Virus record (IMG/VR): IMGVR_UViG_3300046092_000062
Coordinates: 62,001-126,000 of that record
Length of the DNA stretch: 64,000 nucleotides
Direction: 5' to 3' (one strand)
The notes beneath the pieces are model-generated. The model saw nothing but the letters and a program-made list of their open reading frames with translations, did no database searches and was not told where the DNA came from. The position numbers and the translations under genes are program-made. This document shows, piece after piece, positions 4 to 40,800 of this stretch. The number at the start of each line of letters is the position of its first letter. The stretch's first letter is position 1.

Positions 4-77
4 TGGGGATTAGTTAAACGGTATAACTACGGATTTTGATTCCGTCATTAGTGGTTCGATTCCACTATCCTCTGCCA
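4..77 (+). tRNA. tRNA-Gln(TTG)
   Basis: Cloverleaf; anticodon arm ACGGA-ttTTGat-TCCGT; GTTCGATTC T-loop; encoded CCA at 75-77; T1.T72 mismatch. Confidence 0.9.
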
Positions 78-249
78 AAATTTCATATCCTGTACGAACG
101 GCAGCTCTTGCTTTTCAGGATAATCTCGTGTAAAATGTTTAACACAAGAGAAGCTCTTAGCATCGGAATAAGTTCCGTTGCCGAGTTTAAGTAATTCATC
201 GAATCCAGGATTGGGTTTGCTCATACTGTATTTAACACAAGGAAACAAA

Positions 250-753
250 ATGCCCTGGATCCAAAACGTAGCACGTAGCGATGTCACTAAAGGGTTTCAC
301 ATCAACCCCGGTGATAACGCTATGTTGATTCAAATCGTTGACTGCGGCAGCGAATTTCCTACTCCCCTTTACAAGTTTAAAGAAGCTCATCAATTTGAGT
401 TTTTAGATGTAGAGGAAAAGGACTACGTTCTTGAAGAAGAAATGAAGTGCAGTCACGAACAAGCCGCAGAGCTAGTTCGTTTGTTGCAACATGCACTAGA
501 GAATCGCATGAACGTTATTGTTCATTGCCATGCTGGTGTTTGCCGCAGCGGTGCAGTATGTGAAGTTGGAGTCATGCTTGGCTTTGATGACACTGAAGCA
601 TTTCGTGCTCCTAACTTGCTAGTCAAGCATCGCATGATGAAGCAGCTGGGTTGGACGTATGATGAGAACGAAGAGCCAACGATCAATGGTCAACCATATC
701 AATACAGCGCAGGCGGGATCATTTTACCCCCAAGTCACGAAGGTGATATTTAA
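250..753 (+). CDS. Cys-dependent protein tyrosine/dual-specificity phosphatase
   Basis: HC-x5-R active-site loop VHCHAGVCRSG; start moved to ATG 250 after AAGGA RBS. Confidence 0.8.
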   Translation: MPWIQNVARSDVTKGFHINPGDNAMLIQIVDCGSEFPTPLYKFKEAHQFEFLDVEEKDYVLEEEMKCSHEQAAELVRLLQHALENRMNVIVHCHAGVCRSGAVCEVGVMLGFDDTEAFRAPNLLVKHRMMKQLGWTYDENEEPTINGQPYQYSAGGIILPPSHEGDI

Positions 754-1094
754 TGCACAAAATCTACGTTGATGTTCCGTACGAGTACAACTATGTGTAC
801 CGAGTTGATCATGATGAGTCCACTGGTCCAGAAGTGCTAGCAAGGGACTTTGGGGTAAAGTTTGCGTTTATTTGCAACGCTGCTCAGAGATTCAGCAACC
901 CCGAAGGACTTGGAGCAGTGGGCAATACAGGTGATGCTCACGTGGTATGGCTTGAGTCGGAGAAAGACGAATTGTTCTTTCTAATCAAGTCCGGATTTAC
1001 CAAGTTAAATAAAGATGTAGTTGAACTATTCTTGAAAGCAAGATTGGAAGCTATGCGATTAAAAGAGAGGAATGATTATGAAACGTGTAATTGA
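753..1094 (+). CDS. hypothetical protein
   Basis: 113-aa ORF, TAATG-coupled to upstream gene. Confidence 0.6.
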   Translation: MHKIYVDVPYEYNYVYRVDHDESTGPEVLARDFGVKFAFICNAAQRFSNPEGLGAVGNTGDAHVVWLESEKDELFFLIKSGFTKLNKDVVELFLKARLEAMRLKERNDYETCN

Positions 1095-1749
1095 GGTCCG
1101 TGCCGCAGAAGGTGGCGAAGACAGTAAACTATTTGTAAAAGACTTGGCACAAGCCTACATTAAATTTGCACACAGCAAAGGCTGAACTAGCCGCCTGATA
1201 AATGAGTATCTTGGCGAAGTTCATATCTTAGTCGAGGGTGCTGATTTATCTGGCTTATACAACGAGCCAGGTGGACACCGAATACAGCGTGTACCACCAA
1301 CAGAGCGAAAAGGACGAGTACATACCAGTACTGTTACTGTCGCTGTTGTTGATCCAAGTGTGCCGACCACTACCATAAAAGAATCTGATTTGCGGATTGA
1401 ATGGTACAGCGGAACAGGCGCAGGAGGACAACACCGTAACAAGCACCAAAACAGTGCCCGCGTTACGCACATACCTAGTGGCACAGTAGTAACAGCACAG
1501 TGTCGCAGTAGGGAAAATAGTTTGGCAGAAGCTATGCAAACTATTCGAGAAAGAGTTGACAAGATAACAAAAGACTGTTATAATAACAACTTAGCAAGCA
1601 ACAGAAAGCAACAAGTTGGTTCAGGGATGCGAGGAGACAAAATTCGCACATACCGCTTTCAGGACGATACAGTTAAAGATCACGTAAGTGACAAGACTGC
1701 AAGCGTTAAGAAAGTGTTAGCCGGCAACTTTGACTTACTTTGGAATTAA
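1078..1749 (+). CDS. prfA: RF1-type peptide chain release factor lacking domain 1, with in-frame TGA at 1183-1185 (probable readthrough)
   Basis: Frame from ATG 1078 (GAGAGG RBS): MKRVIEVRAAEGGEDSKLFVKDLAQAYIKFAHSKG*TSRLINE...RIQRVPPTERKGRVHTSTVTVAV...GTGAGGQHRNK; PxT specificity motif and GGQ. The ORF track shows only the 1360-1749 part. Confidence 0.88.
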
Positions 1750-1763
1750 AAAGGAAAATTGAC

Positions 1764-1787
1764 ATGAAACGTTCAGGTAAACGATAG
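1764..1787 (+). promoter_or_regulatory. putative 7-codon leader peptide MKRSGKR-TAG followed by two hairpins
   Basis: AAGGAA RBS at 1751-1756, ATG 1764, TAG 1785-1787; stem 1787-1795/1815-1823 and stem 1823-1828/1838-1843. Confidence 0.45.
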
Positions 1788-1849
1788 TGTCATCCTAGAC
1801 CCCCGTATGGTCCTGGATGGCACGTAAAAGAAAAATATTTACGATCCAT

Positions 1850-1924
1850 CCACAGCAAACTTTGCTGGCGAAGTACCCGGCTCTTACCCGGACTAACAGA
1901 GTTCGATTCTCTGGCTGTGGACCA
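1850..1924 (+). tRNA. atypical tRNA-Lys(CTT)
   Basis: Acceptor CCACAGC/GCTGTGG + A + CCA; anticodon arm CCGG-ctCTTac-CCGG; canonical T-arm; A8-A9 instead of T8-A9 and odd D-loop. Confidence 0.7.
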
Positions 1925-1927
1925 TAT

Positions 1928-2002
1928 GGGGGTATAACTTAGCGGCTAAAGTATCTGGCTTTTAACCAGAGAACCAGAGTTCGATTCTCTGTGCCCCTAC
2001 CA
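1928..2002 (+). tRNA. tRNA-Lys(TTT)
   Basis: TCTGG-ctTTTaa-CCAGA anticodon arm, T-arm, CCA. Confidence 0.92.
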
Positions 2003-2127
2003 TATCAAAGTACGCTAGTGCATTATAGTGAATCAGGTCGCTCCTGTGGAAGCTAAAACTGCATCAATTGCCCTGGAGGGAAAGGTCGACGGCTGCGGTT
2101 CGATTCCGTAGCGTACTTTGATATGGT
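1999..2127 (+). ncRNA. long-stem tRNA-like element A
   Basis: Perfect 19-bp inverted repeat 1999-2017/2109-2127 with T-arm GCGG-TTCGATT-CCGT abutting the 3' strand. Confidence 0.55.
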
Positions 2128-2134
2128 AAGGCAT

Positions 2135-2212
2135 GGAAGTATAGCTCAGTTGGTTTAGAGCATCGGACTTTTAATCCGAGGGTCCTGGGTTCGAGCCCCA
2201 GTGCTTCTACCA
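2135..2212 (+). tRNA. tRNA-Lys(TTT), second copy
   Basis: TCGGA-ctTTTaa-TCCGA anticodon arm, T-arm, CCA. Confidence 0.92.
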
Positions 2213-2282
2213 TATGCAAACACATTTTTCTGAACGCCAGTCATTTGCCGTGCAGAGTAGGTCAAGTGTGTTTACATATGGT
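2209..2282 (+). ncRNA. long-stem element B
   Basis: 19-position stem 2209-2227/2264-2282 with one C.A mismatch. Confidence 0.5.
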
Positions 2283-2412
2283 ACTAGAAGGAGTAATTAA
2301 CCTTCGCCATAATCGGGAGTCATGACCCGATGAACTCGTAGTCTTCTAATTGGTTAGGAAAGGCCCGTTATGGGGCTTAATGTTGGTTCGAGCCCAACCT
2401 ACAATGAGTTCG

Positions 2413-2509
2413 CATATATAAACATACTAGTCGGCGACTAAGCGTATTGCACGGTCTCTACGGAGTGAAAGGGTCAGTGGTTCGATTCCACATAGTGTGT
2501 TTTTATATG
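2413..2509 (+). ncRNA. long-stem tRNA-like element C
   Basis: CATATA-T-AAACATACTA / TAGTGTGTTT-T-TATATG stem with T-arm GTGG-TTCGATT-CCAC. Confidence 0.5.
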
Positions 2510-2642
2510 GTGCAAAAGTAATAAAGGGACTTGGGTGCCCAGAGTTTTGAAAACTCACACACTATAGTCGGCATGTGTGTCCACCGTGCATTAACCGACG
2601 TTTAAATAAAGCTAGGGCAAGCGCCAGTTAACGGTGGAGCCT

Positions 2643-2756
2643 ATATAGAAGTATTCTTGGCATAAGTCAAAGCGGGAGAAGAAGCCTAGTATCTGCAGAT
2701 GCGAAAGTTTCAGAGCTTGACTCCTCCTATGCTTGCATTTGAGAGTGCTTCTATAT
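2643..2756 (+). ncRNA. long-stem element D
   Basis: 16-bp stem 2643-2658/2741-2756 (3 G-U) followed by GGTA like elements A and B. Confidence 0.4.
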
Positions 2757-2857
2757 GGTATAGTGTAATGCGAATGCACGGGATCGCCACATAAGCCTTT
2801 GACGAGCGGTGGAACAAGGTTCAGGTGTGGTAGGAACCCACAATGCCATTTAAATTT

Positions 2858-2933
2858 GCCTTTATAGCTCAGTTGGTAGAGCAGAGGATTGAAAATCCTT
2901 GTGTCACTGGTTCGAATCCGGTTAGAGGCACCA
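2858..2933 (+). tRNA. tRNA-Phe(GAA)
   Basis: Canonical cloverleaf, ttGAAaa loop, CCA. Confidence 0.95.
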
Positions 2934-2948
2934 AATTATAGGAGTAGT

Positions 2949-4172
2949 ATGGCAAAGTTTTCGGAGAAGTTCTTCTGTCCTGCACCGTGGACAATGTTAT
3001 ACTATCATGCCAACTCTCCTAGTCCGTGCCACATGATTAAAAATTTAGAGATGGAAGCGACCCCATCTGAATATTTTAATAGCGAATGGCTTAAGAATAT
3101 AAAACAAGAAATGCAGCAAGGGATTGTTCCTGCTGCATGTTCTGGTTGTAAAGAGCGTGAGAGTCATGGACTAAAAAGCACACGCGGCGCTATTTGGAAT
3201 TACTATAATGTAGGACCTGAGCCCGAGTACGAAGATCAATGGTTCGCAAACAAGTTTACCGCAGACAGCCCAACCGTTCCAAAAAGAATTGAGCTTAGGT
3301 TTAGTAATCTATGTAATATGAAATGCAGGATGTGCGACGAAACATCTAGTTCCAGCTTTGCAGCAGAAAAAATTGAACATAAGATTAAACCAGACAAAAA
3401 CGGAAGTCATCTTGAGCATAGCGTGATACCCATCACAAAGATAGAAAACAATTCAATTGATGGCCTCATGGATACTGCCTTTCTAGCGTCAGTTCGAAAG
3501 GTATGTTTAACCGGTGGCGAACCATTTTTAATAAAAGAATATTACAGCTATCTAGATTACTTAATAGACAACGGTTTTAACAAAACACTAGACGTAGAAT
3601 TGTTTACAAATTGCAGTGTATATAATCCATTGTTTATTGATCGACTTAGTAAATTTAAAACAGTTCAAATGGTGATGAGCATCGATGCTGTGGGCAAAGC
3701 GGCTGAATATATTCGTAGTGGAACCGATTGGCCTAAAGTGGAAGCCAATGTGCTTCGACTAAATCAACTAGCAGCTCCATTTAAAATGGAAGTTACAACT
3801 GCCATATCTGCATACAGCCTAATGGACTTTGCAGAGACTGCACGATTTCTAATGAGGTTGTACACCGAAAACAACACCATTGGCGTAAAATGTTACAACG
3901 TAACTTCGCCTCCGGGTATGCACTTTAATAATCTGCCTAAGCCGTTGAGAATACAAGCAATAGATCAAATCGACAAGGCAGTAGAGATTCTAACAGCACC
4001 AAACTATTTGGTACTAGTTACAGAGTTGTTAAACGTGAAACACGCATTGACTACTTCGTCCCCGGATACACCACTGGCATTCTTTGACTATACTAAGAAG
4101 TACGACACCATTAGGGGAGAGTCGTTTGCGGAAGTGTTTTTAACATCTCCTGACAGCACAGATTACTTGTAA
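2949..4172 (+). CDS. radical SAM protein with Cys-rich (twitch/SPASM-like) N-terminus
   Basis: CNMKCRMC (CxxxCxxC), LTGGEPF motif; start moved to ATG 2949 after GGAG. Confidence 0.88.
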   Translation: MAKFSEKFFCPAPWTMLYYHANSPSPCHMIKNLEMEATPSEYFNSEWLKNIKQEMQQGIVPAACSGCKERESHGLKSTRGAIWNYYNVGPEPEYEDQWFANKFTADSPTVPKRIELRFSNLCNMKCRMCDETSSSSFAAEKIEHKIKPDKNGSHLEHSVIPITKIENNSIDGLMDTAFLASVRKVCLTGGEPFLIKEYYSYLDYLIDNGFNKTLDVELFTNCSVYNPLFIDRLSKFKTVQMVMSIDAVGKAAEYIRSGTDWPKVEANVLRLNQLAAPFKMEVTTAISAYSLMDFAETARFLMRLYTENNTIGVKCYNVTSPPGMHFNNLPKPLRIQAIDQIDKAVEILTAPNYLVLVTELLNVKHALTTSSPDTPLAFFDYTKKYDTIRGESFAEVFLTSPDSTDYL

Positions 4173-5161
4173 AGGTTGGCCACATACACAATATGGTCAA
4201 TGGGGTGGTCTTTCCAATTATACACTGCTGGTAGATGATGTTTAATCTCCATAATTACAAACGCTTGCAGCAATGAATGGCTTCGTAGAAAATCTGTTAA
4301 CTTATAGGTTTTTCTAAATTGTTCAATTTCGCTAAACCATTGTAAGTTTTGCTGGGCATCAATGTATGTTTGGTGGAATGACTTTGTGTAACTAGTATCA
4401 AATGTGCCAGCCCCGATAGAGTTAACAAAATTGTCGAACCAAGTGGGAAATCGATCGCTAACAATATCAGTTAACGAGATCTGGTACAGGTGATCTATTC
4501 GGTCTTTGGGTAGTACATAGGTTTGTTCGTTAACTTCATGCCCGTTGTGTTGATTCCGTACACGATACCATTCAGAATACCATTCCAGCCCGCCGGATAA
4601 CTTATCATAGTCGATGCCTCTAAGGAATGGGAAAATTTCGTAATACGATTCAACAAACAAATTCCGCGCCTCAATAGAGTCTTGACAATTAAAACTATCA
4701 AACCCAAACCGACGTTCGACTATTTGATTCGCCTTAAAGAAAACAGGCCATTTGGTGATAGTATTTAATGATCCGTATTTGCGATCGTCGAGTACATCGT
4801 TATCATTGATAATAACAATAACTGGATCGGGATCACTTAATAGTATCGATCGGATAGCCATGTCCGGTCTTGACACATCAAAAGATGTTGGTATGTCATG
4901 ACAGTTGAGTAGAAAAACTTTTTTCTCTTTTGGTTGATTGTATGTCATCCAAATTAGATGTTGATGAATACTTTGATGAGTTGGTATTCTTGCGTGTAAG
5001 TGCGCAGTACCTATTCCTCCAAACATCTCACTAACTTCTTTGTTTACTGGATCATCAACGGTTTGACTAGCTGAGTCAATTTCACTTTTGTTGATGCACC
5101 AATGTATATAACTACCCGACGACCCCGGCGGGTATAATAGATAAATGTTCTTTGACAGCAT
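4163..5161 (-). CDS. hypothetical, sulfotransferase-like P-loop N-terminus
   Basis: MLSKNIYLLYPPGSSGSYI; start moved to 5161, TAAATA on minus strand at 5166-5171. Confidence 0.6.
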   Translation of the reverse strand: MLSKNIYLLYPPGSSGSYIHWCINKSEIDSASQTVDDPVNKEVSEMFGGIGTAHLHARIPTHQSIHQHLIWMTYNQPKEKKVFLLNCHDIPTSFDVSRPDMAIRSILLSDPDPVIVIINDNDVLDDRKYGSLNTITKWPVFFKANQIVERRFGFDSFNCQDSIEARNLFVESYYEIFPFLRGIDYDKLSGGLEWYSEWYRVRNQHNGHEVNEQTYVLPKDRIDHLYQISLTDIVSDRFPTWFDNFVNSIGAGTFDTSYTKSFHQTYIDAQQNLQWFSEIEQFRKTYKLTDFLRSHSLLQAFVIMEIKHHLPAVYNWKDHPIDHIVYVANLYK

Positions 5162-5182
5162 GGAATATTTATTGAAATAAAT

Positions 5183-5256
5183 GCTCTTATAGGTAAATGG
5201 TATATCGGCGCTGTGGTATAGCGCAGTCCTAAGTTCGATTCTTAGTAGGAGCACCA
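5183..5256 (+). tRNA. tRNA-Thr(GGT)
   Basis: Acceptor GCTCTTA/TAGGAGC, anticodon arm GCGCT-gtGGTat-AGCGC (unusual G32), CCA. Confidence 0.82.
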
Positions 5257-5271
5257 CGTGATAAGTATCTA

Positions 5272-6183
5272 ATGCAACATAATTTTTTACCATGTAAATA
5301 TCCAATTATTTGTGCCCCGATGAATAGAGTGTCGGACGTTAAGCTAGCACTTGCAGTTCATAGAGCTGGGTGCTTGCCGAGCCTTGTGGTCCACAATCAT
5401 GATGAATCTGAATTAGCTAACGATGTGGCTAAGATTGTGAACGAAATGAAAGAGTTCACAGAGCTGTCGGGATCAAGCGATTTTATACTTGCACTTAGAT
5501 CAGATTTTTTATTAAAAGATACCAAGCTGCTCCCTGCGATGTTAAAGTACAGGCCTGCGTATGTTGAATTCTTTGACAATATTGATTGGTCTGACATAAA
5601 GGTGGTCAACCTTATTAAGCTGCTTAGAACATACAGAATTAAAATAATCTATAAAATACTTGCACCTAGAATATTGGGCAAGTTAGTGGAATTTGTTGAC
5701 GCTATTGACGTTAAGGGCCCTGATGCCGCTGCCCGTGTGAATACCACAACTACTACTAGTTTAGTAGATCGGATTAAGCAACTGAAATCCGCTAATCCAC
5801 ATTTGCACATTATTGCATCTGGTGGTATGTCATCGCAACAGGATGTGCAGGCATGTATTGACGCTGGCGCAAGTGCAGTGGCATTGGGCACAGTATTTGC
5901 CATGTCAGAAGAGTCGTCGATTTCAGTTGAGACAAAAATGAAAATGATTGAATCAACATTCTCACAAGTTGTGAACATTGGCGAAGCCCAACAAAATGCG
6001 TTAGTGTTTACAAACGAAAAAGATGTTGACGGCAACCACACTGTGGGACTAGAACTTGGTATAAAAAGCCCAGTCGCTGGTCATGTGTTTGTGGGGAAAG
6101 CAATTGATTCAATTGACTCAATTAAAACAGTGGAAACAATCGTGTCGGAGCTAACTGGGGTAACTGATGCAAAAACCCGATGA
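5272..6183 (+). CDS. nitronate monooxygenase / FabK-like FMN TIM-barrel oxidoreductase
   Basis: YPIICAPM N-terminus, IIASGGM and AVALGTVF FMN-binding motifs. Confidence 0.75.
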   Translation: MQHNFLPCKYPIICAPMNRVSDVKLALAVHRAGCLPSLVVHNHDESELANDVAKIVNEMKEFTELSGSSDFILALRSDFLLKDTKLLPAMLKYRPAYVEFFDNIDWSDIKVVNLIKLLRTYRIKIIYKILAPRILGKLVEFVDAIDVKGPDAAARVNTTTTTSLVDRIKQLKSANPHLHIIASGGMSSQQDVQACIDAGASAVALGTVFAMSEESSISVETKMKMIESTFSQVVNIGEAQQNALVFTNEKDVDGNHTVGLELGIKSPVAGHVFVGKAIDSIDSIKTVETIVSELTGVTDAKTR

Positions 6184-7006
6184 TGTAACTATTTGTTACT
6201 TCGGGGGCAGCGGCGGCTTCTTTTGCTTGTACCTTCTTTTGCTTAGTAACCAATACCAATGCTGCTTCGAAAATGGGTCAGCTGACGCACACGTAACAAA
6301 AGTTACGCAATGGGATATACAGAATGTTTCCAATTGGAAAGATAATGAGATATGGCCTAACAACAGCAACACCAAAGCAGAGAGTTTCGATGTTAGCAAA
6401 GTCTTTTTTCTTTGTAACCCATTGCAATTAACGCAAAAGCCCGGAGTGCAAGATGACGTGCTATCTAAATGTCCAGGAAAGAAAATTCTATTGTACACAG
6501 ATTTAGAAACACAATGGCATCTAACAAAAACTAAACGTGCCTACTGGTTTCAAAAAGGACAGCAGCTAAACGGACAAGGACCAAGTTGGCAGACAGCCGA
6601 ATATCGTGAAGAACAAGTGCTAATATGGTATAATAACATCAGACAGGATAGCTGGCCTCAAATCTCCAAGGCAGATGATTTTTACAATCTTCCGCAGGAA
6701 ATACAGGATATTTGTATAACTGACTATAGCATGTGGGAAGTCCTTGACATTGGCAAATTTGACAATGATGACTACCGACCCCGTGGAGTAGAGTTTAGGG
6801 GAGACATAGTGTACAAGAAAGTAGTGGACATTATGCCTAAGATGGACATAGTGGTTAAGCTACAAGATTTGATTAAAACACAAGGCCGTGTGTTGTTCGA
6901 CCAGCTTGGTATTGAGACAAACAAAGACACGCAAAAGTTCATAATCCAGTACCTGTCGTTGCACACAGTCGAGCAGCGGAAATTCCTATTAGGCAAGCAC
7001 ATATAA
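6167..7006 (+). CDS. hypothetical, sulfotransferase-like P-loop N-terminus
   Basis: ICYFGGSGGFF; 279 aa. Confidence 0.55.
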   Translation: MQKPDDVTICYFGGSGGFFCLYLLLLSNQYQCCFENGSADAHVTKVTQWDIQNVSNWKDNEIWPNNSNTKAESFDVSKVFFLCNPLQLTQKPGVQDDVLSKCPGKKILLYTDLETQWHLTKTKRAYWFQKGQQLNGQGPSWQTAEYREEQVLIWYNNIRQDSWPQISKADDFYNLPQEIQDICITDYSMWEVLDIGKFDNDDYRPRGVEFRGDIVYKKVVDIMPKMDIVVKLQDLIKTQGRVLFDQLGIETNKDTQKFIIQYLSLHTVEQRKFLLGKHI

Positions 7007-7031
7007 TCAATTTGGCAACCAACTCATAATT

Positions 7032-8240
7032 ATGATTAATTTAAAACTAGGATATTACTCATGCAACGGAGTCACGTTCGATTCTAAGATTGCTGCATGT
7101 GTGTATTCTGTGCAGCACAATAACGCATTAGTTACGTGGACATTCAACGACCGAGAGTTTAATCAGCACAACTGGACACAAGAACCTGACCTAACACTGG
7201 ATCAATTGTATGATATTAGATCAAAGCAGCTAAGAGATCAGTACGACTATGTTATATTGAGCTACAGCGGCGGCGCCGACAGTCACAATATCCTAATGAG
7301 CTTTATTCGTCAAGGCCTCCATATAGACGAGATTGTGGTAAACACAACTGAGAAAGCTAGTGCAAGATTCACAGAGTTAGATAAAAACAATCTTGACCCC
7401 CGCAATGCAGGAGCAGAGCATGTGTTTCAGACGTTGCCTAGACTACGTGAAATTCAGGGATTGATCCCTAAAACAAAGATTAGTGTGTTGGATTTGTCGG
7501 ATCATCTATTTGAGAGTTTTTCAAAAGCCGATGATGCTAGCTGGGTATTAGAAAAGCGCGAAAGCCTAAACCCAGCTGGAGTAACACGGTTTAATTATCT
7601 GCACTTTGATCAATTGCGCAAACAGTTTGATAAAGATAAAAAAATTGCATTAGTGCTAGGAATCGAAAAGCCCAGGGTGTTTATTAGACACGGACAGTTG
7701 GTACTACGGTTTACAGACCGTGCGGCCAACATTGTTACTGTAGCAGAACACGTTAAAGAATACACAAATAGCACAGTAGAATTCTTCTACTGGAGTCCAG
7801 ATGCAGTGCCAGTGGTTATCAAACAAGCGCACACTATCAAGCGATGGCTTGAGGCTAATCCAGACAAACAGCATCTCTGGGACGTTGACACACTAACACC
7901 GGAGATGGTGAGACTAGTGCATGAGCGAGTGTACAGACCACTGCTATACACTACGTGGGACAACAGTTGGTGGCAATCAAACAAAGCAGTTAACGATTGG
8001 ACAAGCGAGTTTGACCAGTGGTTTAAGGATGGGTACAGTGATACTCGTGCTTACCAAGTGTGGGCAGAGGGTATTGAGTATGTTCGTGAAATTTTGCATC
8101 CTTACATAAACACTACTCATCTTGTTAATGGTCAAGCAGACGGCCTTGACATATTTGTTAAAGAGTACTTAATTGGACCAGTGAAAAATCTTTGTCCAGA
8201 ATTAAAGAATAAACTGTATAGGCATTTGCAAAATAAATAA
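7032..8240 (+). CDS. PP-loop (adenine nucleotide alpha hydrolase) family ATPase
   Basis: ILSYSGGADS PP-loop motif. Confidence 0.78.
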   Translation: MINLKLGYYSCNGVTFDSKIAACVYSVQHNNALVTWTFNDREFNQHNWTQEPDLTLDQLYDIRSKQLRDQYDYVILSYSGGADSHNILMSFIRQGLHIDEIVVNTTEKASARFTELDKNNLDPRNAGAEHVFQTLPRLREIQGLIPKTKISVLDLSDHLFESFSKADDASWVLEKRESLNPAGVTRFNYLHFDQLRKQFDKDKKIALVLGIEKPRVFIRHGQLVLRFTDRAANIVTVAEHVKEYTNSTVEFFYWSPDAVPVVIKQAHTIKRWLEANPDKQHLWDVDTLTPEMVRLVHERVYRPLLYTTWDNSWWQSNKAVNDWTSEFDQWFKDGYSDTRAYQVWAEGIEYVREILHPYINTTHLVNGQADGLDIFVKEYLIGPVKNLCPELKNKLYRHLQNK

Positions 8241-8273
8241 CTAGCGTGTATAATACACAGAAGGGACGATGCA

Positions 8274-8417
8274 ATGAAGTCAAGAGAGACAATCGAAAAG
8301 GCATACGGCAACGTCCCAAAAGAAATTGGGGTCACAGTTGATGTATTTAACTGGGTCCCGGAGTTTAGAGGTGTTAAGTATTACTGGATTCGTGCAGTAA
8401 GATTTTTCACCAGGTAA
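8274..8417 (+). CDS. small hypothetical protein (47 aa, below ORF-track cutoff)
   Basis: MKSRETIEKAYGNVPKEIG...; AAGGGA upstream; fills the gap before tRNA-Ser. Confidence 0.5.
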   Translation: MKSRETIEKAYGNVPKEIGVTVDVFNWVPEFRGVKYYWIRAVRFFTR

Positions 8418-8423
8418 GAATAC

Positions 8424-8514
8424 GGAGTGTGGGCAGGCCGGTAATGCAGCACCCTGCTAAGGTGTAGACTTGTGATGAGCAGGTCATAGGGTTCGATTCC
8501 CTAACACTCCGCCA
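8424..8514 (+). tRNA. tRNA-Ser(GCT)
   Basis: Long variable arm, ctGCTaa loop, G73-CCA. Confidence 0.93.
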
Positions 8515-8532
8515 GTGATAAGTAAGTATAAT

Positions 8533-8608
8533 GCGGATGTAGCTCAGCTGGTAGAGCACAACGTTGCCAACGTCGAGGTCGTCGGTTCGAACCCGATCAT
8601 CCGCTCCA
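8533..8608 (+). tRNA. tRNA-Gly(GCC)
   Basis: GCGGATG acceptor, ttGCCaa loop, T73-CCA. Confidence 0.95.
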
Positions 8609-8613
8609 TAAAT

Positions 8614-8690
8614 GGCTCTCTAGTTCCAATTGGCAGAACATCGGATTCCAAATCCGAGTGTTGGGGGTTCGAATCCCTCGGGGGTCGCCA
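8614..8690 (+). tRNA. tRNA-Trp(CCA)
   Basis: TCGGA-ttCCAaa-TCCGA arm, G73-CCA; D-stem GTTC/GAAC. Confidence 0.93.
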
Positions 8691-8695
8691 ATATA

Positions 8696-9145
8696 ATGAA
8701 ATCAAAATTCTCCGATTCCCAATTACGCACAATCACGAAAGTGGTTACATACCGCGTGATTATCACATGTAGTCACATCATCAATGGGTTTATTGTTAGT
8801 GGTAGTCTTGCTCTTGGATTGCAAATTGCAGGCCTAGCAGCAGTAATTAACAGTTTGTTATTTTGGCTACACGAGCGCATGTGGAATAGGCTACAATGGA
8901 AACGTCTCCATTTAAACAGTTCTACGTTCGTAGAAACCAATCCTAGAAGCATCAGTAAGATATTAACTTGGCGCATTTTCTCAATGTCTAGTAATTTTCT
9001 CATCCCTTACTTGATAACTGGATCATGGGGATCAGCAGCGGCATTCCTTGGGATAGCAGTAATAGTTAACATGGCTCTATACTATCTACATGAACGAGTG
9101 TGGAACATAGTTAAGTGGGGTAAACAGGTCAACGGCCTTTGGTGA
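8696..9145 (+). CDS. membrane protein with two tandem DUF2061-like repeats
   Basis: RTITKVVTYR...LHERMWNRLQW and RSISKILTWR...LHERVWNIVKW; start moved to ATG 8696. Confidence 0.72.
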   Translation: MKSKFSDSQLRTITKVVTYRVIITCSHIINGFIVSGSLALGLQIAGLAAVINSLLFWLHERMWNRLQWKRLHLNSSTFVETNPRSISKILTWRIFSMSSNFLIPYLITGSWGSAAAFLGIAVIVNMALYYLHERVWNIVKWGKQVNGLW

Positions 9146-9207
9146 AATGGATATCATATCTGTCTTCGAAACAGATGGTGGGAGTTCGATCCTCTCAAGG
9201 CCGACCA
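9133..9207 (+). tRNA. tRNA-Arg(TCG)
   Basis: CGGCCTT/AAGGCCG acceptor, TCTGT-ctTCGaa-ACAGA arm, CCA; overlaps last 13 nt of upstream CDS. Confidence 0.88.
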
Positions 9208-9213
9208 AAATAG

Positions 9214-9242
9214 TTGACTTAGTCAACGGCAGTGTGTATAAT
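9214..9242 (+). promoter_or_regulatory. sigma70 promoter
   Basis: TTGACT-17 nt-TATAAT. Confidence 0.75.
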
Positions 9243-9266
9243 ACAAACTGTTCATAAAAGAGTTAG

Positions 9267-9454
9267 CCATGAGCAAGGCAGCTTTCTGTTACCAGTGGTA
9301 GGCGTAGTATCAATAATCTTGCAATTAGTGGCCTGTGTTTAAGTATCGGGAACCCCCGAGGCAACAAAACGATTTTAAAATTGAGAACCGTTTCGAGCCC
9401 ACAACGTGTGGTCTAGGTAGGCATTCGCAAGATGCTGCTTGATCTAGATCATGG
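9267..9454 (+). ncRNA. unidentified structured ncRNA (about 190 nt)
   Basis: Nested stems 9267-9272/9449-9454, 9274-9282/9434-9441, 9316-9322/9427-9433, 9331-9335/9418-9422 plus internal hairpins; no ORF; own promoter. Confidence 0.5.
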
Positions 9455-9469
9455 TTGCCCATCTGATCA

Positions 9470-10105
9470 ATGGGGACCAAGTGGTCCGCGGTTGAAAAAC
9501 AGAATTACATGGCTAACCCTTTTATGAATACATTAACGTTTCAGACCCCGGTACGTATAGTTAATAACTGGGATAAAACCACACAAGTAGCAAAGCACTG
9601 CATCGATCTAGTAAAGAGTCAATCGGCCAGTATCACTAGGGAATACAAGTACAGCGATTACGGATATCACTATGAACTAGGATCAACTGGCACAGTTAGT
9701 CACATCACTAACGGTAGTGCAGAATGGTATTCAGTGACTGGTAAGCTAATAGAATCTACCATGCGCTTTTTGCCGCTAATGCTAGATGACCTAGCAGACC
9801 TTGACCCTACGTTTGCTAGCATTAACTACATGGTGGGCAATGGCGCAGAGCATAGGGATCACGAAAGTCAGCAAACTGGGTTCAATTATTTTTTTGCTGA
9901 TTGTGACAGCACTACCTACGCAAGAAACGCAGACATCTGCGAATCCTATCCTAGCGTAAAAGACACAGGGTGGATCCTTGATATCCAACAACTACACAGC
10001 ATCTCAAATACAAACGAACGCATTTGGTTTAACCTTAGATTTGGTAAACCCTTTGCATATTGCAGAGATTGGTTTGCAGATCATTTGGTATTAACTTATG
10101 AATAA
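9470..10105 (+). CDS. hypothetical, possible 2OG-Fe(II)/cupin oxygenase
   Basis: HRD...LHS facial-triad-like spacing. Confidence 0.5.
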   Translation: MGTKWSAVEKQNYMANPFMNTLTFQTPVRIVNNWDKTTQVAKHCIDLVKSQSASITREYKYSDYGYHYELGSTGTVSHITNGSAEWYSVTGKLIESTMRFLPLMLDDLADLDPTFASINYMVGNGAEHRDHESQQTGFNYFFADCDSTTYARNADICESYPSVKDTGWILDIQQLHSISNTNERIWFNLRFGKPFAYCRDWFADHLVLTYE

Positions 10106-11273
10106 AATTATCTCAATTGAGCCTGCAATCGATCCAGTCAATCGTCCTACATTTTTGTTGGACTGGGAACTAACAATGAAGTGCAATTTGGATTGCGACT
10201 ACTGCTCGACTGGCATTGAGTACGGTGGTCACGACAACAGCACAGCACATCCTCCTAAAGACGAATGCTTAAAAACCATTGACTTCATGTTTGCTTATGC
10301 AGACAAGTACATGCAGCTAAAGCCCAAATGGCAGCGCATGGTGGTTCTCAATGTATACGGCGGCGAAAGTATATTTCATCCAGACATTGTTGAGATCCTA
10401 GAGCAGGTGCGAGCAAGACACACATACGATTGGCCATTGACTGTTACCTGCACAAGTAACGCAGTGGCTGGTAAGAATCTTTGGGAAAAGGTTGCAAACT
10501 TAATTGATGAGTTTACCGTTAGTTTTCACAGCAGTGCATTGCCTAAACAGAGACAGCAAGTACTAGACAACATACTTTATAATAAGGCTATCGGCAGGCG
10601 CCAAAAGGTGGTGTTTGTGATGCACAACGATCCTGTTTTGTGGGATATTAGCCAACAAGCTATTGAGTTTTGTAAAACACACGATGTTAGGTATGTAGTT
10701 AAAGCAAACGACACCCCTACACCTCAGTGGCAGTATAACAAAGAACAGTTTATTTACTTTCAAGATTACTACAAGTCACGCACACCAGCTAAGAGTAGGG
10801 ATGCTCTAACAAAGGCGCTGGATGCAGTGGAAACTGACACAGTTGGCATGGGTAAGGTCGGTCGAGGTTGTTGTGGTGGCCGAAAGCTATGCACTAACCA
10901 AGACCTACAACACCCAACAGCCTTTGTACCACATGCAGATTTCATGGGTTGGAGTTGCAGTGTTAACTGGTACTTCTTGTACATTAAACAGATCAATGGC
11001 GATGTGTACACAAACAAGGATTGCCGTATGCGCTTTGATGGTACAGTTGGTCCAATTGGTAATTTGTCAAATGGTAATCTTATACTAGAACAAGTGCAGA
11101 AAAACATTGACAACAAAGCCATGCCTGTTATACAATGTGCTAGAACAAGATGTATATGCGGTTACTGTGCTCCAAAAGCGCAAGACCCAAAAGATTTTGA
11201 AGCTATTATGGATAAACACATAGTTGACAAGCAAGTCAAATTTGTTTATAATAACAGCTTAGATGATAAGTAA
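10098..11273 (+). CDS. radical SAM protein with Cys-rich C-terminus
   Basis: CNLDCDYC, YGGES; C-terminal CCGG..C, CSV, CARTRCICGYC. Confidence 0.88.
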   Translation: MNKIISIEPAIDPVNRPTFLLDWELTMKCNLDCDYCSTGIEYGGHDNSTAHPPKDECLKTIDFMFAYADKYMQLKPKWQRMVVLNVYGGESIFHPDIVEILEQVRARHTYDWPLTVTCTSNAVAGKNLWEKVANLIDEFTVSFHSSALPKQRQQVLDNILYNKAIGRRQKVVFVMHNDPVLWDISQQAIEFCKTHDVRYVVKANDTPTPQWQYNKEQFIYFQDYYKSRTPAKSRDALTKALDAVETDTVGMGKVGRGCCGGRKLCTNQDLQHPTAFVPHADFMGWSCSVNWYFLYIKQINGDVYTNKDCRMRFDGTVGPIGNLSNGNLILEQVQKNIDNKAMPVIQCARTRCICGYCAPKAQDPKDFEAIMDKHIVDKQVKFVYNNSLDDK

Positions 11274-11284
11274 TTTATCACAAT

Positions 11285-11368
11285 GCGTAAGTGGTGGAAT
11301 GGTATACACTCTGGTCTTAGAAGCCAGCGCCGCGAGGATTGAGAGTTCGAGTCTCTCCTTACGCACCA
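11285..11368 (+). tRNA. tRNA-Leu(TAG)
   Basis: Variable arm, ctTAGaa loop, A73-CCA. Confidence 0.93.
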
Positions 11369-11398
11369 TTTATTATTTTAAGTTTTTCTAAAAAGTGC

Positions 11399-11464
11399 TT
11401 GACACTTAATGAAACTCTTGTTATAATAGATACATGTTAAGAAATTAACAAACGTTCTTTAAAA
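11399..11464 (+). promoter_or_regulatory. consensus sigma70 promoter plus boxA-like antitermination site
   Basis: TTGACA(11399)-17-TATAAT(11422); CGTTCTTTAAAA at 11453-11464 resembles rrn boxA TGCTCTTTAACA. Confidence 0.8.
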
Positions 11465-11465
11465 A

Positions 11466-11750
11466 TTTGTTTTGATGTAAAGTAAGCAGGCGTACCACGC
11501 TAATAGGTTGCGTGACTCTTGTCGAAAATTTGGTCCAGATAGAAAGCTGGGAACTCTTGAGTAGTCTGTAAGCGGCTACTGTGGCGTCTAACACCTATGA
11601 GTTAGAAACGATCTGTTCCACGTAGCAATACGCAGGAAGAATGATTGCAATAGAGTAGAGTAACGCTCTACCGGTTGCATGAGGGTCAACTGAAAGACGC
11701 AAGTCTTACCCGTTACCTTGTAACCAGGTAAAAAGAGGCATCAAAATAAA
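11466..11750 (+). ncRNA. unidentified multi-hairpin ncRNA (285 nt)
   Basis: 12-bp closing stem 11466-11477/11739-11750; at least 6 internal hairpins, several with GNRA loops; no ORF. Confidence 0.6.
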
Positions 11751-11764
11751 TTTCTAAATAACTG

Positions 11765-11838
11765 TTGACAGCAAATGAAAAGTTTGCTACAATAGCAGCT
11801 TAGTTAGACATTGTGCTAACTAACAAAGTTCTTTAAAA
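11765..11838 (+). promoter_or_regulatory. sigma70 promoter plus boxA-like site
   Basis: TTGACA(11765)-17-TACAAT(11788); AGTTCTTTAAAA at 11827-11838. Confidence 0.8.
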
Positions 11839-11855
11839 TAGATACGTATAAGAAG

Positions 11856-11970
11856 TTCTTATACACATGCACATAAATGCGTAGGCCACGCAGATATGGT
11901 TGGATTCATAGCTTGGGCTATTGCCCAGGTTGGCAGGTTCGAAACCTGTGAGTGTGCAGTTGTATAAGAA
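11856..11970 (+). ncRNA. long-stem tRNA-like element E
   Basis: TTCTTATACA/TGTATAAGAA and TGCACAT/GTGTGCA stems, T-arm GCAGG-TTCGAAA-CCTGT, D-like and variable-like hairpins, no CCA. Confidence 0.5.
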
Positions 11971-11974
11971 TTTA

Positions 11975-12875
11975 GGGCAGTTTAATGTCCTGCAAAGAGT
12001 ATGGTTCGCCCAGCTTGATGCGAAGAATAACTGTGGTGACACAGCCAAAGGAGGTATGCCTACATAACTCCGCTAGCAATAGTTCATTTAGACAAGCCTG
12101 CTCACTCCTGTGAGGGAGCGTTCACTCAGCGACGGGTGGATGTAACAGTGACGCAAAGTGCATAGGGAAGAACGTTTGCTTACAAGCCTGAGATTGCATC
12201 AAGGGGAACTTGAGTAGATGGAAAGTAACAGGTGGTGCTGACTTCTATGCGAAACCAACTTTGTTAATTGGTATGAGAAAGGGTAGTGTATTGGTTCGAA
12301 GGGTTGCACCTAAGAGCTCGTATGCAGTTTTAGTGGTTGGTGGACGTAGTAATACGAACATTGGTCGCAAAAGACGACTGAGTAGCTCGCAAGGCAAAAG
12401 GTACGTGGTGTGTTGTATTGTGTATTCCAAAAGATTATGCAGCAACTGAGTCAGCACATCGCAGTAGGTTGATATAGTTCATTGGTAGAACATCTGTCTC
12501 TTAAACAGAATGCGGTGGGTTCAATTCCCACTATCATTACAAAACGCAAAGACTGACTCGGTCGTATGTGAAAAGCATCTAATACTTGAGCCGCAAGGTA
12601 ATCAAGTCAGACGTAACTCGCAAGGTGAAATCTGTTTATGCAGGAAGTTTCGTAGCTACTTAGCGGTGGTGAATGGCTCTAAAGGTCAACGGGATAGAAA
12701 GCGTAGAATAGCATACGGCGACAAGACTACTGCCTGTCTTTAAAAACGGCGATGCTGACAGCAGACTAGACTACTATGCAAATAGGGTTTAGTGGAAGTC
12801 GGAAGAAAGTAGACTCGCAAGGTTTACAATAATGTCCGAGGTGTTGTTAGGTTAGGATGTATTCTCAGTCCGCCA
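11975..12875 (+). ncRNA. probable GOLLD large ncRNA (about 900 nt)
   Basis: ORF-free, GNRA (GCAA/GAAA) hairpin-rich, inside a phage tRNA cluster; segments such as GAAAGTAACAGGTGGTGCTGAC and 3' TATTCTCAG match my recollection of GOLLD; ends approximate. Confidence 0.65.
12468..12539 (+). tRNA. tRNA-Lys(CTT)-like module embedded in the large ncRNA, no CCA
   Basis: D-arm GTTC-attggta-GAAC, anticodon arm TCTGT-ctCTTaa-ACAGA, T-arm GTGGG-TTCAATT-CCCAC; weak acceptor, ends ACAA. Confidence 0.7.
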
Positions 12876-12969
12876 ACTTATATGCAAACACATTAGTAAA
12901 AGTCTGTAAAAGGACGAAGCAACTGACTCTGTAATAGGAGCTGTTTGCTCAGTGTGTTTACATATAAGT
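12876..12969 (+). ncRNA. long-stem element F
   Basis: ACTTATATG-C-AAACACATT / AGTGTGTTT-A-CATATAAGT, nearly the same stem as element B. Confidence 0.55.
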
Positions 12970-13056
12970 ATGCTTTGATGGTTAAAGTTGGATAGGTAGT
13001 GGGTAGCTTGTGAAATCATAGTAGCAAGTCCACAGCAACCCAAACGGTAGAAGCAG

Positions 13057-13129
13057 CTTATTTGAAAGCACATTTGTTCCTGAAAGATTTTACGGTTTGG
13101 ATGGTTCAGCAAATGTGTTTCCAAATAAG
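13057..13129 (+). ncRNA. long-stem element G
   Basis: CTTATTTG-A-AAGCACATTTG / CAAATGTGTTT-C-CAAATAAG. Confidence 0.5.
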
Positions 13130-13224
13130 AATTTGGTGATTGTGTGGAGCTAAGGCGATTCGCTGGACTATGAAGCACGACGAGAGCGTTGAACTTGAAA
13201 TAGGTTCAACCACCAGACTAATAT

Positions 13225-13300
13225 GGACGGTTGGCAGAGCGTTTATGCGCCGGATTGCAAACTCGGTATAAGGTAGGTTAGACTCCTACACCGTCCTCCA
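13225..13300 (+). tRNA. tRNA-Cys(GCA)
   Basis: ttGCAaa loop, T73-CCA; non-canonical T-loop TTAGACT. Confidence 0.85.
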
Positions 13301-13595
13301 TTTTTGCTAGTTTTTTAAAACTAGTTGTGACGTATGGAGATGAGAGATTGCACCTCTAGTTAGCACTTGACACGCTTACTGGAATATTAATCGTGATCCA
13401 GTGACCCGAGTCCCCTGGCTTAATTGCCTTGTTTGTTGACTCTCGGAAATATTGGTATCCTCTGCTTGTTGTATTTTGCTTTAGAAAACAGTTGCCTTGA
13501 AAATCAATTATATCTAATGTACATTGCACATTGTCCCGCAATTGACTTGCCATACGTTGCACCCCTATTAAAATCAAACAGAAAGGAACTCGATT

Positions 13596-14162
13596 ATGAA
13601 ATTTACACTTCGCAAAGCAAACGCCCTACAAAACACAATCCAGGAACACATCAAGACGATCGACATCGCATTGACGGTTTCCCTTAACGAGTTCCAAAGT
13701 TCAACTTCGGTGCTTGGTACCGCACGTGAGACATTGGTCCGCAACGATGCCAAGCGCACACAGTTGACCAAGGCCTTGTACGCAGTCCGTGCAAAGGTTG
13801 GTCGCGCCAACACAGAAGCCGGTGTTGCAGATCTGTTGACAGACGCTGCATTCATTGACAAGCGTTTGGGCTTCTTAAAAGGCCTAACTGAAAGCAAGGT
13901 TGTCGAAGAAATCGCAGTCATTGAAGGCAAGCTAGAAAAGCTTCGCGCACAAGACAACAAGAACCGTGTTTACGGTTACAACGACACAGTTGACACTGGT
14001 GTGCTTGAAGCGGACCAGATTGAAGGTTACAAGGCAGAAATGCGTGACCTGAAGAAACAAAAGCAAAGCATTAATGACAAGGTCCTGGAACTTAACGTTC
14101 GCACCGAGATTGAGTTGGATGCAGATACCGTTTCTTTGCTACAGGCAGAGCAACTGGTATAA
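13596..14162 (+). CDS. hypothetical coiled-coil protein
   Basis: 188-aa ORF, AAAGGA RBS, strong codon bias. Confidence 0.75.
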   Translation: MKFTLRKANALQNTIQEHIKTIDIALTVSLNEFQSSTSVLGTARETLVRNDAKRTQLTKALYAVRAKVGRANTEAGVADLLTDAAFIDKRLGFLKGLTESKVVEEIAVIEGKLEKLRAQDNKNRVYGYNDTVDTGVLEADQIEGYKAEMRDLKKQKQSINDKVLELNVRTEIELDADTVSLLQAEQLV

Positions 14163-14169
14163 ATATTGA

Positions 14170-14244
14170 AGCAGAGTAGAGAAATGGTATCTCACCAGGC
14201 TCATAACCTGGAGACAGTTGGTTCGATTCCAGCCTTTGCATCCA
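14170..14244 (+). tRNA. tRNA-Met(CAT), initiator-like
   Basis: CCAGG-ctCATaa-CCTGG arm; 1:72 mismatch (A.A); CCA. Confidence 0.85.
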
Positions 14245-14250
14245 ATACAT

Positions 14251-14325
14251 GCCTTGATAGCTCAGGGGTAGAGCGTCTCCTTTACACGGAGAGGGTCCGC
14301 GGTTCGAAACCGTGTCAAGGTACCA
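14251..14325 (+). tRNA. tRNA-Val(TAC)
   Basis: TCTCC-ttTACac-GGAGA arm, CCA. Confidence 0.93.
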
Positions 14326-14333
14326 AAGGAAAT

Positions 14334-14407
14334 GCGGGATTAGTTTAATGGTAAAACGAGATCCTTCCAAGTTCAAGTCAGCGGTTCGATTCCGCTATCC
14401 CGCTCCA
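14334..14407 (+). tRNA. tRNA-Gly(TCC)
   Basis: GCGGGAT/ATCCCGC acceptor, T73-CCA, ctTCCaa loop (weak anticodon stem). Confidence 0.88.
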
Positions 14408-26275: not shown

Positions 26276-26563
26276 ATGCGTGTAGAAACCAAAGTTAAAA
26301 TCATTATTTGGACTGTAACATTAGTTACTACTTTTGTTGTAGGCTTCTTAATGCTGCTAATGATTAACGAAGCATTTGGCACAGAAACCCCAGTGGGCGA
26401 GCCCTATGTAGCTAGTTATAGTTACTGCGCCGTTACTACACACGGTGTTAAGGGTCAAAGCTGGTGTAGCCAGTACAAAACAGGTCACGAAATGCGCCAA
26501 AAAACCCACATAAAAGGCCTGTTTTTTGACGGTACAGGCGATCATTTGGTTGTCCAGAAATGA
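26276..26563 (+). CDS. hypothetical membrane protein
   Basis: N-terminal hydrophobic helix. Confidence 0.6.
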   Translation: MRVETKVKIIIWTVTLVTTFVVGFLMLLMINEAFGTETPVGEPYVASYSYCAVTTHGVKGQSWCSQYKTGHEMRQKTHIKGLFFDGTGDHLVVQK

Positions 26564-26578
26564 TTTTGGTTGTATAAT
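26550..26578 (+). promoter_or_regulatory. sigma70-type early promoter
   Basis: TTGTCC-agAAATG..-TATAAT, 17-nt spacer. Confidence 0.72.
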
Positions 26579-26611
26579 AACTACATAGCAAGCAAACAAC
26601 AGGAGCAGAAA

Positions 26612-27037
26612 ATGACAGCAACTACACAACGTGATCCAAAGTGGGACGAGCGCATGGAAGTTCAAGCACAGCACATTCGCTGGCGCGAACAGTTTTACGG
26701 TGTGAAGTTTAACCTGCTCCAAAAGGCTTACGCTCACTTCCGTATGTTCTTTGTCAATAAACACACAATCATTGGTGCTAACTGCACATTGGCTGACTAC
26801 TGCGACAAGTACAAGACAGTTGATGGTCTGCGTGAAGCCATTGGTGACACTCCTAACACTGACAAGCGCAAAGCATACTTCCATGTTTTGACAGACGCTG
26901 GCAAGTTTGCTGCTTGGGCTATCCGTGTACCGTTTTTGTTGGTTGCACTGGCATTTGTCATTGTGCGCGAAGTGGCTGACTTGTGCGTAACAGGCGTACA
27001 AAAAGTGACCCAAATGTTGCCTGGTTCAATCGACTAA
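26612..27037 (+). CDS. hypothetical protein with C-terminal hydrophobic helix
   Basis: Start moved to ATG 26612 after AGGAG. Confidence 0.65.
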   Translation: MTATTQRDPKWDERMEVQAQHIRWREQFYGVKFNLLQKAYAHFRMFFVNKHTIIGANCTLADYCDKYKTVDGLREAIGDTPNTDKRKAYFHVLTDAGKFAAWAIRVPFLLVALAFVIVREVADLCVTGVQKVTQMLPGSID

Positions 27038-27058: not shown

Positions 27059-27360
27059 ATGCAAGCCTGTGTAAACGCCCTGATTATATTGAGCCCAATC
27101 CTGTTGATGGGATTGGCAATCATTGCTTATAACATCTTTGTTCCAGGTCAAAGCCGTGAAGATCGAATTGAAGAACAGTGTTCGAGAATTGAAGCCAAGT
27201 GGGCTCGTATGGCCAAGGAAGGTAAACTGTAATGTATATCGAAATGACAGCCTTTGCTATTCCAACTTTCATTATCACAATTTTCAAAGTGTGTGCAATG
27301 ATTGTGGGTGTTTGGTTAGCCCTTGCACTGATTGTTGGCATGTTCTATCCTAGCAACTAA
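27059..27360 (+). CDS. two small membrane ORFs (27059-27232, 27244-27360)
   Basis: 57 and 38 aa hydrophobic ORFs, RBS before the first. Confidence 0.45.
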
Positions 27361-40458: not shown

Positions 40459-40800
40459 TCGGCGCTTTGAGCGTTTGCTAGCCATCTCTTTAAGGCTAGT
40501 TTGTGGACCTACTTTGATTTCCACGTCTTTACTGTTCATAGTCTTAACGCATGGCTTGAACACAACCCAATCAGCTTTAAGAAACACGTTGATTGGGATT
40601 AATCTATTGCTTTCCCACCACCATTGCTCGCCTAGTTCTAGAAACTTGGCCTTTTGTTCCGGCGTCTTCAAGCTACCAAAGTCGTAGATCGTAGTGATCT
40701 GCTCGTCTGCGTTTTGGACAATCCCGATATAATCATTCCCACCGTACACTAGATACGTTATAAAGGGATATTGTTCTAATAGCTGTTGTATTTGTTCCAC
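40429..40800 (-). CDS. hypothetical protein
   Basis: 123 aa, convergent with mini-DnaE, TAG stop. Confidence 0.7.
   Translation of the reverse strand: MEQIQQLLEQYPFITYLVYGGNDYIGIVQNADEQITTIYDFGSLKTPEQKAKFLELGEQWWWESNRLIPINVFLKADWVVFKPCVKTMNSKDVEIKVGPQTSLKEMASKRSKRRSITLVRRLG

Follow-up and report, generated by a model that had tools for sequence, protein, structure and literature searches.

How can a phage gene for a release factor be expressed when its reading frame is broken by a stop codon that its own product should be unable to recognize? The question arises from a 64,000-nucleotide stretch (referred to below as the window) of a 320-kb IMG/VR contig from a huge phage (loci L001 and L103 are 100% identical), in which a shortened gene of the release factor 1 (RF1) type carries one in-frame TGA near its 5' end. 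The initial annotation of this locus proposed that the gene is completed only when the UGA is read as Trp, so that it reports low or inhibited host RF2. The observation itself is confirmed by our analysis, whereas its interpretation is only partly supported, because the comparative predictions hold but the regulatory role is an inference. The features discussed below are as follows.

1078..1749, plus strand: complete short RF1 gene (223 codons plus the TAA stop) with one in-frame TGA, lacking domain 1.
1078..1182, plus strand: N piece, codons 1-35, the first strand and the long helix of domain 2 that carries the GG-E tip.
1183..1185, plus strand: in-frame UGA (codon 36) at the conserved Trp position of RF1, the proposed site of Trp readthrough.
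1186..1746, plus strand: C piece, codons 37-223, the rest of domain 2 with PPT at 1294-1302, domain 3 with GGQ at 1423-1431, and domain 4.
1191..1274, plus strand: conserved RNA structure 3' of the UGA; the central helix pairs 1197-1215 with 1231-1250, a possible closing helix pairs 1191-1196 with 1269-1274, and a side hairpin spans 1252-1268.
1556..1584, plus strand: consensus sigma-70 promoter (TTGACA, 17 nt, TATAAT, with TG before the -10) embedded in the RF1 coding sequence and pointing at the downstream tRNA genes.
8614..8690, plus strand: phage tRNA-Trp (CCA), one of two copies in the tRNA island of this genome, a candidate reader of the UGA.

The first step is to ask what the gene encodes. 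The ATG at 1078 is preceded by GAGG 7 nt upstream, and one frame runs to TAA at 1747-1749 with a single in-frame stop in the context GGC TGA ACT. When the two pieces were searched separately, both matched RF1 in the same register: the 35-residue N piece matches Pfam PCRF at model positions 103-134 and NCBIfam prfA at 115-146, and the 187-residue C piece matches PCRF at 154-194 plus the RF-1 domain (E 6e-21), and prfA at 164-342 with 153-160 bits, against 100 for prfB and 43 for prfH. The register is continuous across the stop apart from a short deletion. The gene has the GGQ motif and the PxT decoding tripeptide of RF1 rather than the SPF of RF2, and the surrounding residues Q-R-V-P-P-T-E...H-T-S-T match RF1 in an alignment with PDB entries; the same V-P-P-T-E string also occurs in full-length RF1 of candidate-phyla bacteria. 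Nothing corresponds to prfA positions 1-114, and the scores fall below the prfA equivalog cut-offs of 400-423, so that the full four-domain architecture is absent; peptide release at UAA and UAG was not assayed. An AlphaFold model of a relative 88% identical, with W at the site, has a pLDDT of 93.4, covers domains 2-4 only, and superposes on ribosome-bound Thermus thermophilus RF1 with TM 0.91 and rmsd 1.9 A, and RF1 entries rank above RF2 entries in the fold search. PrfH (RF-H) is likewise a short class-I release-factor homologue that lacks domain 1, but the prfH score is far below its cut-off of 167 and the RF1 decoding motif and its neighbouring residues are kept here. The statements in the initial annotation that the protein is of RF1 type and lacks domain 1 therefore hold.

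Is the gene simply a pseudogene, an assembly error, or a pair of separate products made by termination and re-initiation? Gene callers do split or truncate it, and database entries of 172-187 aa start after the stop. However, all 78 close IMG/VR homologues (68-100% identical) have TGA at the same codon, while the flanking codons vary (GGC, GGT, GGA or AGC before it, and ACT, GCT, ACA or GCA after it), and in 77 of 78 relatives the ATG lies exactly 35 codons before the TGA. Independent NCBI and ENA assemblies carry it as well: database proteins of 222-226 residues with W at this position are gene calls made under code 4, and the underlying contigs have TGA, so that public databases hold copies with a W that is not encoded as TGG. 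Random disabling mutations in homologues had been named beforehand as grounds for abandoning the idea, and they are not seen, because more than 100 independent assemblies carry the same single TGA and no other lesion; reads from the source metagenomes were not mapped across the codon. dN/dS is 0.10 for codons 1-35 and 0.11 for the rest, and both parts are therefore translated in this frame. There is no in-frame start codon between the TGA and GTG 1360. The N piece corresponds to T. thermophilus RF1 108-138 and E. coli RF1 112-141, which is the helix whose tip reads the first base of the stop codon, and the C piece alone should therefore not work. A pseudogene, an assembly error or a split gene is thus contradicted by the comparative data and is very unlikely.

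To see how far the stop extends, more distant relatives were collected. Single-protein scans for the divergent lineages P0142 and P0135 found almost nothing, but scans seeded with an alignment reached lineages only 49-62% identical, on contigs up to 523 kb, and all 100 distinct IMG/VR genes have TGA at this position, after a Gly codon in nearly all. In a metagenome scan every short form had the TGA except two (loci L400 and L401), whereas full-length cellular RF1 had TGG. In a maximum-likelihood tree the short forms make a clade of 121 distinct members with SH-aLRT support of 100, of which 119 carry an in-frame TGA; the tree was built with a quick search, and the long branches (L085, L086, L088 and L090) are placed uncertainly. 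The same interrupted gene occurs in cultured Alphaproteobacteria, namely Gemmobacter caeni DSM 21823 (again among tRNAs), Jiella sp. LLJ827, Thalassospira xianhensis MCCC 1A02616 and Rhodovibrio sodomensis DSM 9895, and in Sphingomonas genomes assembled from metagenomes. ORF calling at the Gemmobacter locus, at 70% GC, was too noisy to tell whether it is a prophage. A search of a phage GenBank collection found no close relative of this region. Across these loci GC ranges from 44% to 70%. The initial annotation had missed this wide distribution.

Does the UGA reflect a change of genetic code? In the window, which has a GC content of 43.5% and nearly all of its genes on one strand, 50 of 81 plus-strand genes end in TAA, 29 in TGA and 2 in TAG, and many TGA stops sit in ATGA start/stop overlaps. 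Tail-fibre-like and replication genes, helicases and a transglycosylase are intact under the standard code (code 11). Only this gene in the 64-kb window has an in-frame TGA, the rest of the 320-kb genome and its complete 354- and 364-kb relatives not having been scanned, and no tRNA with anticodon UCA was found in the window or in about 60 related tRNA islands holding hundreds of tRNAs. One other candidate, the pair 26276-26563 and 26570-27037, is in frame across a TGA, but was rejected because the downstream gene has its own AGGAG plus ATG at 26612 and neither piece has a family match. Whole-genome reassignment is therefore rejected for the window, as the initial annotation had also concluded in calling this local recoding rather than code 4. 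The TGA-recoded Jade phages provide the relevant comparison (Borges et al. preprint): they too have a phage-encoded RF1 associated with decoding of UGA as Trp, but they have in-frame TGA in many late genes, a TGA suppressor tRNA and a TrpRS, and their code-change module is itself written in standard code, whereas here only the RF1 gene carries the TGA, TGA ends 36% of genes, and no suppressor tRNA was found.

What residue does the codon stand for? The aligned residue is W in 17 of 22 full-length cellular RF1 sequences and I, F or L in the rest. The initial annotation had stated that bacterial RF1 and RF2 usually have G-W in this segment; the preceding residue is in fact G in only 9 of the 22 RF1 sequences, and RF2 was not tested. 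It had also proposed, as a comparative test, that the TGA should be conserved or alternate with TGG and that synonymous sites on its flanks should be conserved, and the outcome was as predicted. Three relatives have TGG at the site, L085 and L086 inside the clade and L092, a short relative, outside it, while L090 has TGA. A further lineage, L088, has TGG at the site and a new TGA five codons later, which looks like relocation of the stop rather than its loss. Selenocysteine is a formal alternative, because a UGA followed within a few nucleotides by a conserved hairpin resembles the layout of bacterial selenoprotein genes. However, homologues have W, L, I, F, V or A at the site and none has Cys, the position is the conserved Trp of RF1, no tRNA-Sec was found in the window or in about 60 related loci (selB was not searched for), and the hairpin sequences and apical loops differ between lineages. 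Selenocysteine is thus very unlikely, and Trp is the likely reading.

The next question is whether the neighbourhood of the stop carries a recoding signal. Synonymous variation falls to 0.30 of expectation at codons 36-47 and again at codons 53-59, and these two stretches pair with each other. RNAalifold finds the helix independently. On 35 sequences, 82% of cells in the central helix are paired, against 33-50% when the partners are slid, and eight pairs show changes on both sides, although the structure tested was derived from one of the aligned sequences, which favours it. Across 100 distinct genes, the 84-nt stretch starting at the stop is the most stable in the gene, at about -26 kcal/mol against about -17.5 elsewhere. 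In most lineages a stable hairpin starts 5-12 nt downstream of the UGA, and divergent lineages have hairpins of different sequence at the same place, starting 5-7 nt after it. Of 20 diverse sequences, 12 have z of -2 or below for the 90 nt after the stop, and the window scores -4.57; the signal is strong in the main clades, but the most divergent TGA-bearing members (L090, L183, L232 and L381) show no significant structure; the hairpin is therefore not universal, and whether a covarying 3' structure belongs to the arrangement as a whole is left undecided by these data. The three TGG variants show no significant structure. This hairpin had escaped the initial annotation.

The stop itself sits in a leaky context. 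The codon before it is GGN in 115 of 119 genes, and the base after it is A in 92, G in 22, C in 5 and U in 0 of 119; by contrast, 14 of 29 genuine TGA stops in the window are followed by U. The base after the stop is also constrained by the next amino acid. Published work says that UGA followed by A is prone to misreading by tRNA-Trp and that U after the stop strengthens termination (PMC5289835), which fits the +4 A context on which the initial annotation had relied.

Which tRNA, then, would read the UGA? The RF1 gene lies inside a tRNA island in nearly all relatives, a setting that the initial annotation did not mention; the window has 16 tRNAs, and the 20.5 kb around the gene has 43, including two tRNA-Trp (CCA). 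One rival view is that the gate is set by tRNA rather than by RF2, the UGA being decoded by a specialised phage tRNA-Trp (CCA), so that RF1 would appear only after the island is expressed and the element would be a timer. About half of the 22 phage tRNA-Trp genes found near the RF1 gene have a mismatched 27:43 pair at the top of the anticodon stem, and most have U11-A24, the state produced by the Hirsh G24A suppressor mutation in E. coli; both features are reported to raise UGA reading (PMC13092985). In a wider phage tRNA-Trp family, 42 of 118 have a mismatched 27:43 pair. On the other hand, both copies of the window's own genome have U11-A24 but ordinary 5-bp anticodon stems; a scan for a further copy with a 4-bp stem in this genome covered only part of the collection and gave no answer. 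U11-A24 is common in nature, and L120 and L155 carry other 11:24 pairs yet have the same TGA, so that this feature is only a weak lead. Some TGA-bearing homologues in cultured bacteria have no tRNA nearby, and an efficient UGA reader would also read through the 36% of phage genes that end in TGA. We therefore take ordinary near-cognate reading by Trp-tRNA (CCA), from the host or from the phage island, as the base case, and regard a specialised phage tRNA as the main rival, though an unlikely one; any link between the phage tRNA-Trp and the UGA is an inference.

Taken together, these observations suggest programmed readthrough, and we hold the following explanation with moderate confidence. The gene would encode a functional RF1 without domain 1, predicted to be specific for UAA and UAG, made only when the ribosome reads codon 36 as tryptophan, with Gly in the P site, a weak stop context and, in most lineages, a hairpin downstream, which is the usual layout of a programmed readthrough signal. 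RF1 does not read UGA, so only host RF2 would compete with the tRNA at this codon, and RF1 output should rise when free RF2 is low and fall when it is high. Extra RF1 could take over the phage's UAA stops, which are 62% of those in the window, and free RF2 for UGA stops, giving an indirect homeostatic loop. What the analysis itself demonstrates is the conserved stop, the purifying selection on both sides of it, its alternation with TGG, the covarying structure, and the RF1-type fold and motifs; the insertion of Trp, the efficiency of readthrough, the dependence on RF2 and the benefit to the phage are inferred, no expression, proteomic or reporter data having been available, lake metaproteomes not having been searched for the junction peptide, and nothing being known of the RF2 level or prfB regulation of the unidentified host. 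The data fit equally well a gate set by Trp-tRNA supply or by the strength of the hairpin, or a plain attenuator. In its boldest form, the element is a natural sensor of free RF2, built from in-frame UGA readthrough, that many huge phages, and elements in Alphaproteobacteria, would use to top up RF1 when RF2 is overloaded, coupling two release factors in one loop; this is possible but tentative. It would be the in-frame release-factor feedback that was proposed before prfB was sequenced.

Another rival to the sensor view is that the UGA may be only an attenuator, keeping a potentially harmful RF1 at a low fixed level through constant low readthrough. The same conserved stop and leaky context would be expected, a plain attenuator would leave the same comparative signature, and excess release factor can plausibly be harmful. 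However, a weak ribosome-binding site would do the same job, yet the gene keeps a good GAGG site; the stop is kept across GC contents from 44% to 70% and across a deep radiation; in one lineage it was relocated rather than lost; a dedicated hairpin is conserved; and only UGA, the one stop the product is predicted not to read, is ever used. We consider a simple attenuator unlikely.

How does this arrangement compare with other systems? [quoted passage not shown] Here, however, there is no frameshift, homology continuing in frame 0, and the product is RF1, so that any feedback is indirect; the stimulator is a 3' hairpin, whereas that of prfB is an upstream Shine-Dalgarno-like element. The 2016 recoding review states that an in-frame readthrough version was envisaged before the RF2 genes were sequenced, that no such bacterial RF2 gene has been found, and that the RF1/UAG counterpart is also unknown (PMC5009743). 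It also mentions a release-factor gene of a giant amoeba virus that is expressed through readthrough plus frameshifting. That virus-encoded class-I factor, which is of the eukaryotic type, likewise needs stop-codon recoding for its own synthesis, but it uses two recoding events and its sequence is unrelated; it was not examined here. Programmed UGA readthrough in the Q-beta A1 protein and in alphaviruses and related cases also has a conserved leaky UGA read by a near-cognate tRNA and, in the animal-virus cases, an extended stem-loop a few nucleotides downstream (PMC3159437). Those cases make a C-terminally extended second product at a fixed ratio, whereas here, in a dsDNA phage gene, the 35-aa short product is presumably inert and the readthrough product is the only functional one. 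Full-text literature searches found no description of the present arrangement in bacteria or their phages.

Programmed readthrough is rare in bacteria and their DNA phages, and here the arrangement is conserved across a large radiation of huge phages and in elements of cultured bacteria. If confirmed, it would show how tRNA-rich phages handle termination as well as elongation, and it would provide a compact natural UGA readthrough element (the stop plus its hairpin) and a natural RF1 without domain 1, useful for studying termination that does not depend on RF3. As to the host, the homologues in Alphaproteobacteria and the promoter embedded in the RF1 gene are only hints. This promoter has 12 of 12 consensus matches, and the codons that form it are conserved at synonymous sites.

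The RF1 gene is surrounded by a very large tRNA island, with 16 tRNAs in the window and 43 tRNAs in 20.5 kb around the gene, covering nearly all amino acids and including two tRNA-Trp (CCA). Protein genes are interspersed among these tRNAs, and relatives share this layout. The features observed in and around the island are as follows.

Window 4-14407, and positions 1-20561 of L103 (the 20.5-kb stretch around the RF1 gene): the tRNA island.
Window 12405-12871 (+): a GOLLD RNA in the tRNA island (Rfam RF02032, 198.8 bits, E 3e-55).
Window 12468-12540: a tRNA-Lys (CTT) embedded in the GOLLD RNA.
Window 1850-1924: a tRNA-Lys (CTT) called by ARAGORN.
Window 2889-4172, 10098-11273 and 178-753: genes for two radical-SAM family proteins and a dual-specificity-phosphatase-like protein.
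Window 1556-1584 (+): a perfect sigma-70 consensus promoter inside the RF1 coding sequence.

It should be mentioned that the tRNA-Lys called by ARAGORN at 1850-1924 is not reported by Rfam's tRNA model, either at its gathering score or in a search at E up to 1. The two radical-SAM family proteins and the dual-specificity-phosphatase-like protein are encoded among the tRNA genes and might act on tRNA, although whether they do so is unknown. The promoter consists of TTGACA, a 17-nt spacer, and TATAAT, with TG before the -10, and its codons are conserved at synonymous sites in relatives. It explains a third dip in synonymous variation within the RF1 gene, and it probably drives the downstream tRNA genes.

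We also found that many phage tRNA-Trp (CCA) genes have a mismatched 27:43 pair (C:U, U:U, U:C, or G:A), which gives a 4-bp anticodon stem; examples are the tRNA-Trp genes of loci L108, L115, L124, L127, L131, L140, L143, L155, L162, and L171. In one widespread family (locus L255 and following), 42 of 118 tRNA-Trp genes are mismatched at this pair and 43 have G:U. The mismatched pair has recently been linked to UGA reading. None of the 120 loci examined for that family showed an RF1 gene within the stretch retrieved.

Among all plus-strand genes in the window, TAG is almost unused as a stop codon, terminating only 2 of 81 genes (27123-27353 and 40475-40687). The phage nevertheless encodes the factor that reads UAG.

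The homologue in Gemmobacter caeni DSM 21823 (L458, positions 2851-3531) has the same TGA and lies among eight tRNAs, in DNA of 70% GC on a 446-kb contig, but it has P-L-G in place of the P-P-T decoding tripeptide. In another lineage, represented by the homologous loci L088 (positions 551-1222) and L089, the usual site is TGG and an in-frame TGA is found five codons downstream, inside a 7-bp hairpin. The identical sequence appears in two independent samples. Finally, public protein databases hold this gene (for example, as the protein entries P0001, P0012, P0089, and many others) either translated with code 4, giving W at the TGA, or truncated to 172-187 residues that start after the stop; in other words, an annotation artefact hides the recoding.
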